DNA of 64,000 nt from positions 76,260,001 to 76,324,000 of the forward strand of contig OZ296656.1 in assembly GCA_965655095.1 (NCBI GenBank), read 5' to 3'. Positions 5,940 to 61,700 of this stretch are shown here, piece after piece; within the stretch, counting starts at the first letter, position 1, and the number at the start of each line of letters is the position of its first letter. The notes under the pieces are model-generated. The model worked only from the letters and a program-made list of their open reading frames with translations, did no database searches and had not been told where the DNA came from. The translations under genes and the position numbers were made by a program. Source of the DNA: Haplodiscus bocki. Lineage: Eukaryota.

Positions 5940-8169
5940 TAGCTATCGGATCATTCGGTGCTTTTTTTCTTAAAAAAAGCTATTATCCAGCGCTTAGTAT
6001 TTCGTCCGTCTTGCCAAGAAAAACAAAAATTATTTTTGCGATTTAGTTTTCCCATTTTCAATCTTCATGTAACTTACAAAATCCTCAAGTAGTAGCAGTA
6101 GCAGTAGAAAATTACAAACTCAAAAAAAACATTCGATTTGATGGCGGGTTGTATTGCTGAAGATGAAATGGTAGCAAATCAAATAGTGGATAGTCATTAT
6201 ACTTTCGAACAACCATTATATAGAGCATGCAATAGTTTCGTGAAAATCGTAAAAAAACATAAAATTGTTGTATTCCTTCAAGTTATAGATATTCAAAATT
6301 GATTCTTTCGAGACCAATAAATCAGCGGAATGAATAAATTATGAAAAGAAAATTGTAGATTTTATGCACGTAGAATCTTGTTCATCTTTCAACAAAATCC
6401 GAGATTTGTACTCGTTTGGTTAAGAAAATCATTGAAACATTTTGGATTTGTTGGCAAGGTATCTCGCCGGGATTTCCCCCATATGCTAAGAAGGCCAAGA
6501 TATTGGGAACGCAAATAAGATCCGGCAGCAATGTATATTAAGTTTCAAAAAATTGAGCAACGCTGCATCGATAAAACTACAATCGATCAAATAATTGTCT
6601 TTGGTGCTCGAGCAAAAAGCGCTGTTATCAACGGTTCAATTTTTTCTAAGATGTGCTTCCAAACGAAAAAAATTGAAAAGAAAACAAATTTTATTGAAGC
6701 GATATAACGTGGGAGGGTTTTGTAGCGGGGTTTTCAAGCTTAACTGAATTTTGTCAGGTGGTCATATCTCGCGTTAAAGTTAGAAAATATAGCTCAGGAG
6801 TAGTCACATCTCATAACTTTCGCCTCAGTCTTTTCTCACAGCCAAATTGGATTTTGTAAGAGAAAGTTTCAAACGAGGTCTTAAATCTTCGAATACAAAT
6901 TCTGACACATTCCATGACAAGCCAAATTCATTATTCCACGTACAAAGCGTGGACAGAGGAAGACAAGACCGATAAAAACCATGAAACGAGAATGTTTTGC
7001 AACAAAACCGTATCGGAACGTTGCGTGCAACCCAAAATCGTGCATGAATAGCCCTTGTTTTAACATTTGCATCTTTTTCACGAAAAAATCCAGAAGAATC
7101 GCTAGAAACTCAAAATCTGAGCGCTCTTCGAGCTGGAGAAGTGATATCAAAAAAGAAACTTTTATGGTGTGATGAAATACTGAGTTATCTACAATTCCTT
7201 AAAAGTACGTCTATATTCTATGTGTATGAAGCAATTACTGGAAATACACCCGTGTTGATGTTTTCACCTCACAATTCATTCTGCATTAAAAGAGCAGAAG
7301 AAGTCACAATAGAAGAGAAAAGACACATCTAGCTATAATGAGAACGCAAGCAGAATATTTTTGGGAGACTATAACACAAACATCGGTTTCCAACCGCTGA
7401 GAATGGAGAACGGTGGATAACGCACCAGTGCTCAACCTACCAACAAAAACACCTGAATACGAACACATTAGTATGACTGAGACATGACACATCGGTTTCG
7501 GTCAAACGCTGGACCAATCCGCAGGTTCAGACATTTTGCAGTGTCTGAACCAAATAAATAATTCATTGGTGCTGAACAGACATTTACCAATGTTTAGCTC
7601 TGTAATCTGATTTTAACTAAAATGAACAAACGTATTGCGGTGTTAAATCAAAAAATCACGGGTAGTAGTGCTCTTACAGACCTTTCCCGATGTCTGAAGC
7701 TAATTTATCTCCACACTCAAAATCCATGGCGCTCACTAGATACTTTTAGTACATCAGCTGCAAAAAAACGAACACGCTTAAAACAATTGCTAACGTATCC
7801 TAGTAAGGATAATAGCAGAATTAACAGTCCCTACTAAACCCGGTTGATAAATCAACCAACAGACATACTCTGATCTCTGTGCAATTTGTGCTTTTTGCGT
7901 ATTCCAGCGCATGGACATTTTCCAATGCAAACAATATTGTGTGCTAGAACCTATATTCTGCTCAAAATCAGCCGTAATTCAATAATTTGAGATTATTTGA
8001 AGCTGGATAATTAGATAATCTGCCAGATTTTTTTCATAGATTAGTACAAGAATTTGCATAAATTTCATGCGTTTGACGCTCTAGCGGCAAATTTGCATCT
8101 GAAACTTTATTTGTTTACTTATTACAAAAAGCATTGAGCTAATACGAAGACACTGATGGTATTAAATGC

Positions 8170-10455: not shown

Positions 10456-10655
10456 NNNNNNNNNNNNNNNNNNNNNNNNNNNNNNNNNNNNNNNNNNNNN
10501 NNNNNNNNNNNNNNNNNNNNNNNNNNNNNNNNNNNNNNNNNNNNNNNNNNNNNNNNNNNNNNNNNNNNNNNNNNNNNNNNNNNNNNNNNNNNNNNNNNNN
10601 NNNNNNNNNNNNNNNNNNNNNNNNNNNNNNNNNNNNNNNNNNNNNNNNNNNNNNN
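10456..10655. other. Assembly gap (200 N)
   Basis: Run of N. Confidence 1.
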
Positions 10656-24700: not shown

Positions 24701-27700
24701 ATAGTCATTCAAAACGTTGATCGATCAAAAATTGCAGCTTGGATGAAAAATTGGTATGAATTTTGAGAAAGATATTTGCTTGTTTGACATTTAGCAGATT
24801 TTATCCTTCAAGTTTCAGAGGCTAGGTATTTACACCGTAGATATTAGAATAAAGAGTCATTTTCCAGATTTAAAAACCTGTCCTTCTAAACTTTGACGAA
24901 AAAAGTCCTACTGGTACTTTTGCATGTTAGTGACTGTGAATATGGAGTATCATAAAAAGTGGCGGAGATTTAAAAAATCTGATGGAAAGTAACCTTCATG
25001 ATTAGAGTTGAAAAAAAACAATGTTCAAAGTCAAAATTGTAACAAAAAAGAAATGAGTAAATGTTATTTTTTGTTTAAATGCTTCCGAGCTCGGTCTGAC
25101 GGCAGGAACTACACAACGTACACAATGAAGTTTTCCTTGCAAGAAACTGTCCAAAGTCCTTTTCTTGAAATTTCAATCGGGTCGCGTTGACCCTTTTACT
25201 CATCTGGGATGACAACGAAAAAATTATTAGAAATTTTGTCAAGCAACTACTTTTTATCGAATGAACGTTTCAAGTTTCCAGGGCAAGGGGCACCAAAAAA
25301 TGTAAACACATTTCGGGAAACATAAAAATAGTTTGTAAAAAGTACGGATTGCTCTAAGTTTGGGCTGTATATGGGGTGACACTGTGTGTTTGCATCATAT
25401 ATGGCGCTATGAAATCTGCAACCTGTAATCTATGTGGTTTCCATAAAATCTGGAAAAGGATAAAATGGATTAATTCAATGCATTTTTTCTCATTTTTGAC
25501 GGAGTATCAAAAAAACCGACATAAATTAAAAATTTTGATGAGAGTAGAAAGAAACAGTGTTCAAAATCGAAATAGTAACATAGAAAGAATTGAGGAAATA
25601 TAAGGGTTCGAACTTATACCGAGCGCTTCGGAACCATGTTGTCCTACCACTGCTCCAGCGGGATTTCTGACATATTCCAGATTTTTTTGAAAACATAAAT
25701 ATATGAAGGAAGTCAAAAAAAATCTCTTGTCCGACGCCGGTGTCTTTATTACAACTTTTCTTCAATAAATCGGCCCAAAATAAACTGAATTTCACGAACA
25801 ACGATCCTATTGAGTGAAAACTTCATCTTACATAATCAATTTTATGTGGCGAAAAAGAATAACCTCAAGATCTTGATGAAGTTCCCAAGATTTTGGCAAG
25901 CGAAAATAGCGATACAAGCACTGCGCGGAGTATTGTAAAGGACAATAGCTCCTTTAGTTTTGTTTTGTTGTAAGACCACTTTCGCTATTTTTGTAACCAT
26001 TTTTTGGCTCCATATTTTAATTATTGAAGAAAAATCATTCCAGAAGTTTTTTTCTTTTTTTTTCAGGTAAAGTTTTGTCAATTTACTTATATTGAGTTTT
26101 CTCACAAACGTTAGGATAAAGATGCCTCCAGCGCAACGTCCCCGTCCGAATCTCTTTCTCTTCATTGTTTTTTTTTGTTTTTGTTGAAAGCTTACAAATT
26201 TCCTCAGAGATTAAGTTTTTGATGCACAAAGTACTGGTTTGCATGTTTCCTTCTACCCATCACCTTTCCTTTTATTCTTACGATTTTGAAAAAAATTTTG
26301 ATCTAGTCCAATTAGAATTTTTTTCTTATCCTGTCAATTTTGGACGCACATTTGTTTGTTTACAGGCTTTATTCTAAAAGTATCGATCTTCTATTGTTTT
26401 TCGGTACCAAATCATTTTATCCTCAAAAAAACACATAATCACTTTTGTTATCCGAGTCCTTCAAAAACCGAATGAAAATAAATTGAATCCAAAAGTCCAG
26501 ATTCAAGCCTCAGCTTCTACGAAAATATTGTCGGAACATCAAGAAAAGCCTGAAAGTATAGACCGAGAGGTTTATCGTAGATTTTCGAAGCAAGTTTTCT
26601 CAATAGATAGTCTGTGCATTTTTGTTCCTTGAGCTCTGAGTCAAAAGGAATCATCTTTAGACTGACTCTGAGCGAACAAGGCATTAGTCGCCACTTTCAG
26701 TCCTTGAAAAAAATTGATGAAAAAACTTCAGAGCGCTAAATGTCTTCATTTTGTGGTTTTTGAGAATAGTTTTTCGGAATGTGCATTGAGCGTTATCTCG
26801 AAAATGTTCCACCTGAAATCAATCAACAACCAACCTAAAAAAACAGACTTTACGATACATTAGGATTTTCATTCATTTTTGTACTATTTCTTCTTCGATG
26901 TGTACTCGGGCAAGTGCGGCCATCGAGTCTCCAATTAATAGTTGCCAAAAGTAAACATGGATCTAAAAGATTCGGTCTCCAGATTTGAATTTCAACTCCT
27001 GCAACGATGATGCTCGAAAATCCGTAAATTGGAGGAAAAAAAGAATATCATCGACATTCTAAACAATTTTTGTCCGTTTTTAGTCGTGGAAAGTTTTTTA
27101 AACGTTGTGTCGTTCAAAAACTTTCCAGAAATAGATTCATTCTGAGCAAACAAATTCTTCGTTTTTATTTTTAGCTCCAATAAAATGCTTGTCCAAAACT
27201 CTTGTTGCTTTGTAAAATAACTTTCCTCAGTGTCTGCTCGACCATTTTTGTTCGTCGAGCCCTCAGTGGAATAATAGCTGTAAGTCGAAGGAATCTGGGA
27301 ATGCCAGCCCTAATTATCAATTTGGTGTTTCATGGAGGATTTTGAGAGTTTTTTGAATAATGTCAGAAATTTTTTTTCCGTTCTCAAGATCACTTACAAA
27401 ATCAAAACCGTTTCCTCAATGTCTATCAGATACAAATTATGGCTTCCACCTCGAACGTGGAGACTATACTTGAGGTAATTTTTTTCAAAATTATATTCAA
27501 AACCGTCATCTTTTGTTTAAACTTCGCGGCGAGAAGTTTGCCGGTGATTGATTGATTCACACTGCTCTTAATAACGTCTGGAAATGATTTTAAAAAAATT
27601 TTATCTAAGTAATTAAGAGTGTTTTCTACAGCATTGCTGATGTGTAACATGCACAATCAAATCATTTAGTGTTTATGAGTTAGCATTCGATATTCAGAAA

Positions 27701-27738
27701 AAAACAGAATCTTTCTTCAGGGTGCTCTGTGAAATCAT

Positions 27739-29087
27739 CCTGGGTCGAATTTTTTCGGGAATACGCTTCTATTTTTCCATGTAATGGCGCAAACGCCGCT
27801 AACTTTCTAGCAAAACGCCGTTAACGCCTTTATACCGACAAAGACCGCCGTTAACGCCGTTAGCGTTCTGGTTAAATGCCATTAACGCTGCTATACCACA
27901 AAAAAGTTTCTACTAAGAATCTAAATTTCTCAAGTCAAAAGCTCATGGTCATTTAAAACTTCATTCGACAGAGTTGAGAAGCTTTCAGAGCAATAAATCA
28001 TCGAAATTGTTGGGTAGTCGATGGGTTGGAATTTGGGCTTGAACGTGGTGGCCCTGCCAGTGCAGTGAACATGTCATGACCAAGCAAGACTACACAAAAG
28101 TTGAACTTGTAAAGGATCGGCTTCTTGGTTCGAGTCTTGCAAAAGTTCCGACAGTTTTAACCTGAATGCTTCTTGCAAATTTAAATTAATTTTTATCCTG
28201 GTTGCAAAGTCCGTATTTATAGGTGTTCTGTTTTTACTGTCTTGCGATGCTCTGGGTTGTTTTCCAGTACCAGGAGTAAAATTTTTGTTCTTTTAGTGTC
28301 TGAAATCTTGAAATGGTTTTTACCTGAAACGTAAGTTTTTTTGGGAAAGCTTTTTATTTCTTTGTACTTTTTTTCAGTATTGATGGGGCTTTAAATTTAA
28401 GTCTGCAAGTGGTAGATTTTGCACTTTGAGTGTCATGACCAGCCAAAATTACCCAAAATTTGAATTTGTAAAAACTCGATTCCTTAGTTCGAATCTTGCA
28501 AAAGTTCCGACAGTTTTCATCTGAATACTGTTTTCACGTTCTCCAGTTTTTCCTCACTGGTTACCAGCTCCTTGTTCATTCGCTATTTTGGAGGCCTTTG
28601 TGTTTCACTGGGTTGTTTTCAATAGCAGGAGTGAAGATTTTGTTCTTTTTTTCTGATCTGAAGTGTTCAAATTGTTTCTTGATGAAACTCATGTTTTCGG
28701 ATATGTTTCATTTGTGAACTTCTTCGTAATCCGCTAAAAAAATCCGTTGGTGTTTTGCTGGTATAACAGCGGAAAAAACGCTCGTATAGCAACTGGAATT
28801 ACCGCCGCTCTTTTTCCGGTAAACGCTGTCAACGCCGCTATTTTTCTGGTTCAACGCCGTTAACGTTGCTATTTTTCCGGTTAAACGCCGGTAACGCCGC
28901 TAATTTTCCGGTGAAACGCCGGTAACGCCGCTAATTGTCCGGTGAAACGCCGTTATCGCCGCTTTTTTTCCGGCTACATGCCGTTAACGCCGCTTCTTTC
29001 CCGGTTAATAACGGCTTCTGTGGCTAATTTTGACCGCCGTTAACGCCCTTATACCGGAAAGATTTCGGCCAATATTTCGACCCGGAG
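27739..29087. mobile_element. Non-autonomous DNA element with AACGCCG subterminal repeats
   Basis: TIR cctgggtcgaa.t / atttcgacccgga. aacgccgttaacgccg arrays at 27790-27895 and 28800-29050. Confidence 0.7.
28060..28710 (+). repeat. Tandem pair of SINE-like units with a B-box-like motif
   Basis: tgtcatgacc...gttcga(g/a)tcttgcaaaagttccgacagtttt occurs twice (about 28072-28330 and 28431-28710). Confidence 0.6.
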
Positions 29088-29514
29088 TTTTTTTCGTAGT
29101 TTCGTAGCAACCTTTCTCCAAGTTTTTTCGTACTACTGACGAATTGCAACCAGAGTCGCCCTCCCGCAGATCAAACGTAGCATTTTTTAATAGACAGATT
29201 TGAGTCCCGAAGTGGTCACCGAATTATCTTATACGGTTTCAGACTTAAAACCTTGGGGCATAAATTACTTACTAAAGTCCGTCTAGGGGTAACAGCTCCG
29301 GCCAAGCCAAAGAAGGTCTTTTTTCTGCTGTTAAGCACGTGAACTCTTTTTTCAGATCTTTCATTTCGAATCCAGCACATATTCTTTTTACCATAGCTTT
29401 TAAACAAAAATACTTGAATGAAAAACTTGAACAACTTTTCCAACAATGTAAAAGACGTTGCAACTGTTTTTTGCCACTTCAAAACTTGCGTCAGTACTAA
29501 TGGTTGTTCATGTA

Positions 29515-30378
29515 CACAATGCTTGGAATTTCGGTTTTCTTGCCGAGAAAATTCTTGGATTTTGAGATTTCTGGCCAAGATTTGGCAATAATTCTTGGCT
29601 AAACGACGCAATGTTTTTCAAGATCGTGGAAAGAATTCCGAGAAAATTTTTGGAGTTTGAAGAAAAAATTTAGCAAAGTTTTTTTGCATCAATGTAATAC
29701 AATACTGAAGCAATCATCCTCGAAGAATCAGAAAGGCGGTTACTCCTGCGTGTGCCTGAAACTCAACGTGGCACGATCAATGAAGAATGAAACAATAATT
29801 TGAAATAAATTGAAAAACAAAACATCAAACATCTTGGAATTTGTCTAAACTTTCTCCATCTAGTAGGAAACGAGACGCAACTAAAAAATGCATTCTACGA
29901 CTCTTGTTTCCGAAATATGAAATTGACGTCATTGCAGTCAAGTTGTCTTGCGTTCAAGAGCTGACTCAAAAATACTGAAACAGAAAAATAAACAGGTTGC
30001 TCATCGGAAAAGTTCACTATCTTCGCAGCAATCCAATGCAGGTGTTTTTCATTTCCATTGGAATATCCATAAGCCGCGGTTCCAAAATCCTCTTTTTTTT
30101 TGCTTGAGGATAAAAAGCATCCAAATTTTCTGGTTTGATGAAACATTACTTGACAACCAATTTTAAAATGGACAAAAGACTATGCTAATTTTCTCCGATA
30201 TCCAAGAGTATGATCTTGGATTTCTTGCCAAGATCTTGTTTGTTCATGGATTTCTTGGCCAGATTAATTACCAAGATCCTGGCCAGAAATCTAAAATAAT
30301 CAAGATCTTGTCAAGAAAATCGAGATTATCCCAATTATTCAACTTCTTGGTAACAAAACCGAAACTCTCAGCACTGGG
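29515..30378. mobile_element. Non-autonomous DNA element with CTTGG/CCAAG repeats in the neuropeptide intron
   Basis: Left end TA-CACAATGCTTGGAATTTCGGTTTT versus the reverse complement of the right end, TA-CCCAGTGCTGAGAGTTTCGGTTTT. Confidence 0.75.
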
Positions 30379-30490
30379 TAAAATCTAACAAGCTTCCCTA
30401 CGTTTTCATTTGAAAAAATTGTCTACTCAGACACATATATTGTACATTTTTCTCTTATCTTTCATAACTTTCATATTTATATTTTTTCAG

Positions 30491-30706
30491 GATCAGATAG
30501 TGTTCCAAGACGAGAACGGTGAAGATTTCGACGACAAGCGTTCTTCTGCGATGCACTTCTACAAAAGGGCAACTTTTCCCGCGGGAAACCTCAGAAGATC
30601 TTCTCCATGGCACTATGGAAAACGATCCTCGGCCATGCACTTCTACAAAAAGACCCCTCCGGCTTTCCTCAGACCCGCCGATGAGTCATCTTTAACCTTC
30701 TATTGA
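30491..30706 (+). CDS. Terminal coding exon of a multi-copy neuropeptide precursor (SSAMHFY x2, SSPWHY-amide)
   Basis: Polypyrimidine tract and acceptor (ttttttcag|GAT) at 30490/30491, phase 0. Translation is DQIVFQDENGEDFDD-KR-SSAMHFY-KR-ATFPAGNL-RR-SSPWHY-G-KR-SSAMHFY-KK-TPPAFLRPADESSLTFY*. It has an acidic spacer, dibasic sites and a G-KR amidation signal. The two SSAMHFY copies differ only at synonymous sites. The N-terminal part of the ORF-track call (30410-30490) is intronic. Confidence 0.88.
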   Translation, partial: DQIVFQDENGEDFDDKRSSAMHFYKRATFPAGNLRRSSPWHYGKRSSAMHFYKKTPPAFLRPADESSLTFY

Positions 30707-30897
30707 TTGACCTAAATCAGTTCTGCGACCTTAAGCTCGAATCAAAGGTCAATGACCGGGAACAGTTTCAGCCAATCAAAATTGAGAACCCAATTTCAAT
30801 TGATAATCGGACGCACCAAATTTCACTTTCTAGCCCATCTAAAGTTTGGAAGAAATTGTGTTCCAGTCAAGTATTAGCAATTTATGATTTATGTTGT

Positions 30898-30903
30898 AAT
30901 AAA
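30898..30903 (+). promoter_or_regulatory. Putative polyadenylation signal of the neuropeptide gene
   Basis: First AATAAA downstream of the stop codon, about 190 nt after it. Confidence 0.5.
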
Positions 30904-31439
30904 TCTACTGTTAGAAACCTGAAATGATGATATTGTCTTAAGTAGCAGAAGATTTCTGTGAGTTTGTTATTTTGATTGTAATCAAGCTCAAAATTATTAA
31001 ATGTTCATGTTAGTTGAATTAGTTTTTTAGAAAAAATTGCTGAACGCAGTTCATAAATACAAACAGAAATTCCCTGTAAAGAATTTTGAATAAACATATG
31101 GTAACTATAGTTTCAAACAGACACAGCAGTGCTGCAATATTTTCCGTCGACGGTGGGTCACAAATGGCTCAGAAGTAAAATTGCTGAAAACTTCTAGAAA
31201 AACATAGGCACTTTAAGGCGCGAGAAGGCTGGCTCGTAGCTCAATAAGTACCAATTTAGACAAAAACTGGTGTTCTCGAAACCGATATCTTCGTGTCCAT
31301 AGGAACCTTTTGTGCATTTTTTTGGAAAAAAATGTGAAAATGCAGAAATTTATTCGGGCTTCGACTGGAAAAATCTTGGCTGATGTTCCCAAAAATGATT
31401 TATAAGTGTCCAGAAGAACATTTCGATCGAAAAAAATTA

Positions 31440-37606: not shown

Positions 37607-38979
37607 TTGAAAAAGACTGATTTTGCGGCTGATCCTCTGGAGTTGCCTGAATGGTCAAGTCTTTTTAATGCAGTAATTTTCAATGCGCTCTTGGATGACA
37701 ACGCAAAGATGAACCTTTCAAAGACATTGGTGAAAAGCGAAGCGAAAGCCACAAGAGGAGGGCTCGGTTTTTCTGGGGTTTTTTATCACACTGCCTGGGC
37801 GACCTTGATTCGCAGCTTTGGTCGACCCCAGACAGTAGTGAATGCTCGAAGGAAGCATATTCAAACGTGTCCCTTCATCAAGCCGCATGACTTAGCAGCT
37901 GTCATCAAATATTCCCAACCTATTACCACAAATGTCAACCTCTTGAATTAGTACGGCTTCACAGGTGACTTCAGTTTGGAATCTGTTTTGAGCATGGCCG
38001 TCCAAAAACTGCCGCCAGAATTGAAAACGAAATGGGTGTTCTATGCAGAAAGACAAACCCACCAGCGGGCAAATTTCAGTGAACTTTGTGAAAGGTTGAA
38101 AGACGTCAATTTTGTCCACGATGAATTATTGGCTCAATTCTGGCAGGTGAGTGACAAAAAGCAGTCAACGTGTAATGACACATTGAGAGCATCGGGGTCT
38201 TCAATGTCCGCGGCAGCTGACGAAACTTTGTTATCATCCTTGAATTTCAATGCAAAGGCTGCTAACAAGGGTGTGGTTTGCAGCAACACCCATGGATTGT
38301 GGACTTGTGACGCTTTCAAGAAGCTAACGCCAAGCGATCGGTACAATAAAAAAAAGAAAGTATTTTTTTCCTTTGTTTCAGTGGTGGACATGCTTTGAAT
38401 GATTGCAAGATTAACGAACGTGAAATTGACGTTTGCAAAGGACATCACAACAGGTTGTTACGCAGACCACAAAACACGAACTTTTTTCCACCAACGTCCA
38501 CAAAAATTGCTGGGACCTACGCAAGTGTCGGTATGCATTTTTTTGGTTTTTCACTTGTTTACGAAGTAGAAACAACAAACAATGGAAAAACAATGAAAGC
38601 TATTGCTTCAGTCGATAGTGGCTCTGGTCTCTCATGGATAGACAAGTCATCGACAAATCAATTGAATCTGCATGTTGTGAAACGAGGTCTGACAGTCGAT
38701 GGAATAACTGGTACTGAAACCGACGACAGTGTACCTGCTAAAGTCACCATCACTTTCGAAGAAAACGGGAATAATTGTTTCCATTTGGCTGTTCATGAAA
38801 ATCTAGTCATTGGTGACAATTTCTACAACAATCAACGAGCGCAGAGTCAATACACTCAGCTGGAGAGGTTTATTCAGAGAAAAATCAATTGTAAAATTGT
38901 TAAATTGGTCCCGGGAACGGATTGCTTTACTTTTATTCGACCATTAGGGTGTCGGCGTGGTCAACTAGGTGAGCCTTGA
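37607..38979 (+). pseudogene. BEL/Pao gag (DUF1759-like, Zn knuckle) and aspartic protease fragments
   Basis: ORFs 37607-37951, 37976-38398 and 38395-38979 carry DPLELPEWSSLF, VQKLPPELKTKW, C-x2-C/H knuckles and DSGS. Confidence 0.85.
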
Positions 38980-61500: not shown

Positions 61501-61700
61501 NNNNNNNNNNNNNNNNNNNNNNNNNNNNNNNNNNNNNNNNNNNNNNNNNNNNNNNNNNNNNNNNNNNNNNNNNNNNNNNNNNNNNNNNNNNNNNNNNNNN
61601 NNNNNNNNNNNNNNNNNNNNNNNNNNNNNNNNNNNNNNNNNNNNNNNNNNNNNNNNNNNNNNNNNNNNNNNNNNNNNNNNNNNNNNNNNNNNNNNNNNNN
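61501..61700. other. Assembly gap (200 N)
   Basis: Run of N. Confidence 1.

Follow-up and report, generated by a model that had tools for sequence, protein, structure and literature searches.

A two-exon peptide precursor gene, very probably of the acoel SSxxxF family, with its exons on two assembly contigs

SSxxxF peptides of acoels and the precursor exon in the window

The SSxxxF family of peptides is not new; it was described in acoels in 2018, when precursors with SSxxxF repeats were reported from Isodiametra pulchra, Eumecynostomum macrobursalium, and Convolutriloba macropyga (Thiel, Franz-Wachtel, Aguilera, Hejnol 2018, MBE 35:2528; PMC6188537). Supplementary Table 2 of that study gives SSxxxF counts of one for I. 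pulchra (Ipul), one for E. macrobursalium (Emac), and three for C. macropyga (Cmac), and detection of SSxxxF peptides by mass spectrometry is marked for I. pulchra and C. macropyga only (PMC6188537). In C. macropyga, the 'SSAMHFF peptide' precursor Cmac_643.1 consists of a signal sequence, a stretch ending in PTEQ, an acidic spacer, SSAMHFF, a further spacer, three SSPWHY-Gly copies, a second SSAMHFF, and a tail ending in GFYA (PMC6188537).

In this current study, we analysed a 64-kb stretch of DNA (referred to here as the window) that contains a peptide-precursor coding exon at 30491-30706, read in frame 1. The coding part of this terminal exon (71 codons plus TGA, phase 0; plus strand, as are all window features of the gene given below) was delineated by its ORF, by its homologues, and by an intron position shared with locus L001 and the C. 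macropyga locus L019. Its order is DQIVFQDENGEDFDD-KR-SSAMHFY-KR-ATFPAGNL-RR-SSPWHYG-KR-SSAMHFY-KK-TPPAFLRPADESSLTFY-stop, in letter-for-letter agreement with a first-pass annotation of this DNA, whose acidic spacer, KR/RR/KR/KK sites, two SSAMHFY copies, SSPWHYG, and tail ending in SSLTFY were all confirmed. The exon opens with the acidic pro-region spacer (30491-30535), which aligns with the acidic spacers of homologues, and with a KR cleavage site (30536-30541) that forms an invariant column in the homologue alignment. The first SSAMHFY copy, a predicted free-acid heptapeptide (30542-30562), corresponds to the published acoel SSAMHF[F/Y] and is followed by KR, the spacer peptide ATFPAGNL, and RR (30563-30598); the spacer peptide reads AAFPAGDL in P0003, a close relative. 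SSPWHYG (30599-30619), the predicted source of SSPWHY-amide with Gly as the amide donor, is present three times in homologue P0001 and also in P0005. A KR cleavage site, recognized from the sequence and the homologue alignment (30620-30625), leads to the second SSAMHFY copy (30626-30646). The KK site and the 17-residue C-terminal tail occupy 30647-30703, ahead of the TGA stop codon (30704-30706), and a tail ending in FY or FYA was also found in P0003, P0005, and P0001 when the sequences were aligned.

The window gene passed all sequence-level tests for membership of the SSxxxF family. Several SSxxxF-type paracopies lie between dibasic sites on one small precursor; each SSAMHFY copy is directly followed by KR or KK, with no Gly; SSPWHY-G-KR is present and specifies the same peptide as in C. 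macropyga; and homology was detected to a published member (P0005, E 1.4e-14). A hydrophobic N-terminal sequence was also recognized by manual criteria, with an extension of 45 codons ahead of it. It is therefore very likely that the window gene is the orthologue, within this acoel-restricted family, of the C. macropyga 'SSAMHFF peptide' precursor, that is, a two-exon, multi-copy neuropeptide precursor gene of which 30491-31105 is exon 2. The first-pass annotation had pointed to a likeness to acoel SSxxxF peptides, and this likeness proved exact, given that the C. macropyga precursor carries both SSAMHFF and SSPWHY-Gly (Thiel et al. 2018). It had also proposed a candidate lineage-specific signalling system; the implied novelty was overstated, as SSAMHFF and SSPWHY-Gly were already in print, with mass-spectrometric detection in acoels.

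The peptide exon was found to be single-copy in the 1.5-Gb genome (G000:C9:76290491-76290703), and the SSAMHFY motif was not encountered elsewhere in the 64-kb window in any of the six frames. A second genomic match, L003 (E 3.97), was considered as a paralogue and rejected; its translation contains stops and lacks the peptide layout.

Transcript, intron, and division of the gene between contigs

Expression was assessed by comparing four sequencing runs (X1-X4) for contig coverage over 25001-31000 in 30 bins. Runs X1-X3 gave an even, DNA-like coverage of ~15-80x in every bin outside the repeat bins 27601-29200. By contrast, the small run X4 reached a depth of ~228-400 from 30487 onward and otherwise covered only a few repeats; X4 was taken as RNA from this coverage pattern and from an exon-exon contig, none of the runs being recorded as RNA. 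This 914-nt X4 contig aligned with 30487-31000, continued for 105 letters beyond 31000, and carried 295 upstream letters that depart from the genomic sequence preceding 30487. Of this upstream part, the final 30 letters were examined; they had a unique genome match at C1265:16484-16513 on the minus strand and were absent from the window. On C1265, the matched 30 letters are followed by TCAG and then GTTATT. Given that TCAG precedes 30491 as well as the exon 1 donor, the junction was placed as CCTGATCAG joined to GATCAGATA, with GT-AG borders and in phase 0. The point at which the contig departs from the genome coincides with a pyrimidine tract and AG splice acceptor, tcatatttatattttttcag (30471-30490), in which cag occupies 30488-30490. 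These data demonstrate that exon 30491-30706 is expressed and spliced, in one RNA-like run. The first-pass annotation had predicted a spliced terminal exon and had named the lack of a transcript using the 30490 acceptor as the outcome that would speak against it; instead, a contig of run X4 proved to be spliced at this acceptor, with an upstream exon on one side and sequence as far as ~31105 on the other.

The 3'UTR extends over 30707-31105 and contains AATAAA at 30898-30903 and at 31089-31094; the X4 contig ends, at ~31105, just past the second of these. A 21-nt block, CCGGGAACAGTTTCAGCCAAT (30756-30776), is identical in L017, a relative's transcript, although the remaining 3'UTR is poorly alignable, and it may be a candidate regulatory site.

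Exon 1, the signal-sequence exon (locus L004), is on the minus strand of the second contig (G000:C1265:16480-16698); base 16480 is its last, and TCAG stands at the donor, followed by GTTATT. It encodes LMMVWILFVALVAVKSVTSFAVDIPRPDQ, with a 13-residue hydrophobic core, then SFA/VD and eight residues to the intron; its signal sequence reads MMVWILFVALVAV up to SFA/VD and is followed by a stretch ending in IPRPDQ. A putative cleavage site within SFA/VD, judged by hand, has Ser at -3 and Ala at -1; a comparable arrangement, with a small residue at -3 and again Ala at -1, is seen in P0003, P0004, P0005, and L001. The secreted-precursor reading of the first-pass annotation is supported, by manual criteria, through the hydrophobic sequence of the exon on C1265. 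Counted from the first ATG, the product would comprise 144 aa; counted from the ATG-ATG that precedes the hydrophobic core, it would be 99 aa long. Upstream of 30490, the window held no convincing candidate for exon 1 when it was scanned for an ATG, a hydrophobic core, and a phase-0 GT donor, the real exon being on C1265. When the exon-1 locus was compared with the window by blastn, only two matches of ~69% identity were returned, which were taken for repeats.

With exon 1 on C1265 and exon 2 on C9 (both of assembly G000), the gene is divided between two assembly contigs; C1265, which is small and high-numbered, is taken to be an unplaced contig. If C1265 is contiguous downstream, the intron measures at least 16 kb. 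The C. macropyga gene also has two exons (aa 1-61 and 62-154), meeting at PETEQ/DALLYSED across an 11-kb GT-AG intron in phase 0. In L001, a signal exon ending in ALPPTDQ followed by GT (6371-6457) lies 3.5 kb upstream of a peptide exon that starts with ETALIYED, and in the window gene the junction is PRPDQ/DQIVFQDE. All three genomes therefore agree in intron position and phase, and in the two where both exons can be observed, these lie in cis. Because the exons are in cis at the same intron position in C. macropyga and L001, the C9/C1265 split was read as an assembly fault, and linkage of exon 1 and exon 2 in cis in the window genome would be expected by analogy with these two other genomes.

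As to the surroundings of the exon, two 200-N stretches are present in the window (10456-10655 and 61501-61700), the first being the sole gap that the window has ahead of the peptide exon. Within the intron, 27600-29200 holds very high-copy repeats, with a summed contig depth of 1e5-1e6 in the DNA runs, compared with ~15-70 in the flanks, and with many internal joints (skips of ~980-1030 nt); their appearance is that of a tandem or satellite-like array or of an abundant mobile element. A DNA pattern for WDF-WDF-WDF, representing a second acoelomorph peptide family and used to probe acoel identity, matched satellite repeats only and was uninformative. Pfam searches of ten neighbouring ORFs returned nothing but one sub-threshold match, to DUF1759, in ORF 37607-37951 on the plus strand (E 1.8e-4; its 21.9 bits fall short of the cut-off, 25.4). 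DUF1759 is a domain of retroelement gag-like proteins. The stretch of 36-42 kb around this ORF is slightly GC-richer and holds several ORFs; the region of ORF 37607-37951 is probably a decayed retroelement.

Homologues and selective constraint

Homologues were sought by phmmer, using the exon translation against 1.84 billion proteins with a cut-off of E 1e-3. Only P0001, P0003, P0004, P0005, and two spurious repeat proteins passed this threshold; the finding of just four true matches is consistent with a narrowly distributed family. The closest was P0003 (167 aa; 79% identity, E 7.6e-27), which has a window-like layout and comes from a Logan contig of SRR19327882 that lacks the intron and hence represents a transcript. 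P0004 (186 aa, JGI 3300030951, E 1.5e-15) contains three SSAMHFF and four S[NS]PWH[IV]G copies, whereas two SSAMHFF and three SSPWHYG copies are found both in P0001 (90 aa, from the ENA metagenome contig L001, E 4e-13) and in P0005 (154 aa). P0005, the one homologue with a named source, is derived from OZ077302.1 of GCA_964194025.3, the published genome of C. macropyga, an acoel (PMC13650328), and is 56% identical to the window exon. It confirms SSPWHYG-KR in C. macropyga, where the machine-read text of the published supplement shows the Gly as 'C'. A weak match, P0002 (82 aa, MGnify, E 5.2), carries SSAMHFY and STAFHF-Gly. The precursor layout with dibasic sites and Gly amidation is kept in all five homologues. 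Two proteins were discarded, namely P0006, a 950-aa repeat protein with a spurious low-complexity or dibasic-repeat match, and P0007, an unrelated protein matched through dibasic-repeat similarity only. P0007, from another animal, is itself a 460-aa precursor with ~20 copies of [AP]PMFVG-KR, i.e., PxFV-amide-type peptides.

Selection was measured by the Nei-Gojobori method, comparing the window gene with the relative's transcript L017. In the peptide block, from the first KR to KK (37 codons), dN/dS was 0.04 (pN 0.02, dS 0.64). Values elsewhere in the precursor were 0.43 for the signal region (20 codons), 0.26 for the acidic spacer (22 codons), and 0.42 for the tail (19 codons); the N-terminal extension (45 codons) gave 0.25, with dS there saturated (2.75). 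These results demonstrate that the peptide block is under strong purifying selection. The first-pass annotation had deduced such selection from the codons of the two SSAMHFY copies, which begin with TCT TCT GCG (30542-30562) and TCC TCG GCC (30626-30646) and show three synonymous differences and no replacement, and the peptide block value bears this out. Moreover, when the window gene was compared with the more distant L001, synonymous sites were near saturation (pS 0.69) and the peptides were unchanged save for Y/F, which makes the argument for constraint from synonymous differences solid.

The 45-codon extension ahead of the hydrophobic core of exon 1 is open, in frame, and starts with MKSYNV. 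If translation starts at this first ATG, the hydrophobic core would be placed 45 residues into the protein, which would make for a long n-region or a signal anchor. An in-frame extension before the core is present in every orthologue; it is stop-free, rich in S/T and basic residues, has its own ATG, and spans 13-65 codons (L004 1715-1581, minus strand; L017 334-489; L001 6281-6370; L019 10001-10096). Its length is 13-31 aa in C. macropyga, 30 in L001, 45 in the window gene, and roughly 45-65 in P0003 and P0004. The 20 nt around the first ATG are identical between the window species and its relative, with the 5'UTR before it diverged, and all alignment gaps within the extension are multiples of three. 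Identity at the first ATG and gaps in threes suggest, from sequence comparison, that the extension is a long n-region or signal anchor rather than 5'UTR.

Alternative readings, processing, and relation to known peptide families

Could the exon be a chance open frame, a dead exon, or a repeat-derived segment without function? Its surroundings are rich in repeats (DNA-run depths climb to 1e5-1e6 in bins 27600-29200) and the neighbouring ORFs have no firm Pfam match, but the exon is single-copy, is transcribed and spliced, has homologues down to E 7.6e-27, and encodes a peptide block with dN/dS 0.04; this reading is already refuted, and we assign it next to no probability. It also seems very improbable that the exons on C1265 and C9 are truly unlinked loci whose transcripts are trans-spliced, with the split not being an assembly fault. 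The sole genomic copy of the upstream exon does sit on another contig. Against this, C1265 is small, high-numbered, and presumably unplaced; the donor of exon 1 is an ordinary GT; the exons of C. macropyga and L001 are in cis, separated at the same codon by an intron of 11 kb in the former and of 3.5 kb in the latter; and a 200-N scaffold gap lies in the window upstream of the peptide exon.

The remaining alternative concerns where the product acts, since a real and processed gene might supply peptides of gland or other secretory cells (with exocrine, pheromonal, or defensive roles) rather than of neurons. According to a 2026 review, neuropeptides are expressed in the acoel I. pulchra by neurons or by secretory cells, and some of the peptides occur more broadly, at a lower level, in non-neuronal cells. 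The X4 contig is also deep (~400) relative to other X4 pieces, contig depth being a poor measure. On the other hand, short, dibasic-flanked, partly amidated, multi-copy peptides that are extremely conserved across acoels are the classical signature of neuropeptides, and the SSxxxF family was placed among neuropeptides by Thiel et al. 2018 (PMC6188537). We therefore regard a non-neuronal source as unlikely and retain the reading of the gene as a neuropeptide precursor.

Because prohormone processing is well established, the following steps can be proposed for this neuropeptide precursor. The precursor would enter the ER by means of its signal sequence, proprotein convertases would cut at KR, RR, and KK, a carboxypeptidase would remove the basic residues, and PAM would turn the C-terminal Gly of SSPWHY-Gly into an amide. 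The predicted products are two SSAMHFY peptides (free acid), one SSPWHY-amide, the ATFPAGNL spacer peptide, and a C-terminal peptide ending in SSLTFY, and they would be released from neurons as signals onto receptors. Processing, amidation, neuronal release, and receptor action are all put forward here by analogy with known prohormones. Both Cu2_monooxygen (PHM-type) domains and the P domains of proprotein convertases score above their Pfam cut-offs in the genome, which is compatible with such a processing pathway but not proof of it. The Cu2_monooxygen domain (PF01082) is also found in dopamine beta-hydroxylase-like enzymes, and hence its presence is no proof of PAM. As the first-pass annotation had supposed for acoel SSxxxF peptides, no receptor was found in the literature up to the 2026 review for any acoel-specific multi-copy peptide. 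The biological question raised by this gene is thus which receptors respond to SSAMHFY and SSPWHY-amide, and why amidated and free-acid peptides are mixed on one precursor.

Beyond acoels, possible SALMFamide homology has been raised, with SALMFamide antibody staining in acoels cited and convergence of short motifs deemed likely (Thiel et al. 2018, PMC6188537). Window peptides share with the echinoderm L-type SALMFamides (S1, S2, and relatives) only a superficial S-x-[LM]-x-F motif. Unlike SALMFamides, which are amidated at Phe, the main window peptide has an extra C-terminal Tyr and no amide, and neither of the protein database searches returned an echinoderm protein among its matches. It is doubtful, with little probability in our judgment, that SSxxxF peptides, together with the xenacoelomorph LxFamides, would be true homologues of echinoderm L-type SALMFamides, with SSAMHFY and SSPWHY-amide acting on distinct receptors. 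If true, SALMFamide homology together with such receptor pairing would be a peptidergic character bearing on a Xenacoelomorpha-Ambulacraria alliance.

Within xenacoelomorphs, LxFamides have been proposed as possible SSxxxF paralogues, and residues in common with ASALHFamide-type peptides have been pointed out (Thiel et al. 2018, PMC6188537). Like the LxFamides, the window peptides are short and S-rich, have an x-H/L-x-F type C-terminus, and are arranged in a multi-copy precursor with dibasic processing. Unlike the LxFamides, which end in Leu-x-Phe-amide, they end in M-H-F-Y as a free acid or in W-H-Y-amide. The C-terminal Leu-x-Phe-amide of LxFamides and SALMFamides is absent from the exon, whose peptides have MHFY or WHY-Gly ends and in which there is no LxFG, and our sequence searches found no link between the window family and LxFamides.

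Relative to the literature, what is new here is the two-exon structure with its conserved intron, the region-specific constraint, the N-terminal extension in all orthologues, and the exon split in the assembly. Of the four neuropeptide families known exclusively from acoels, one is thereby correctly anchored in a genome; its exon-intron structure is common to three genomes, and the free-acid and amidated peptides alike show evidence of being very strongly constrained. With the signal-peptide exon on a contig taken as unplaced, automated annotation of the assembly will either overlook the gene or yield a shortened version of it. The closest described system is Cmac_643.1, with several differences in detail. 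The window gene has two SSAMHFY and one SSPWHYG in alternation, whereas in C. macropyga two SSAMHFF copies surround three SSPWHYG; the last residue of SSAMHF- is Y in the former and F in the latter; the spacer is ATFPAGNL as opposed to a PLTEEEL-type sequence; and the N-terminal extension is longer (45 aa) than in C. macropyga. The mature peptides are nonetheless alike (SSAMHF[F/Y] as a free acid, plus SSPWHY-Gly), and both precursors share the order of signal sequence, acidic spacer, peptides, and a tail ending in FY(A), as well as a common two-exon structure and intron position.
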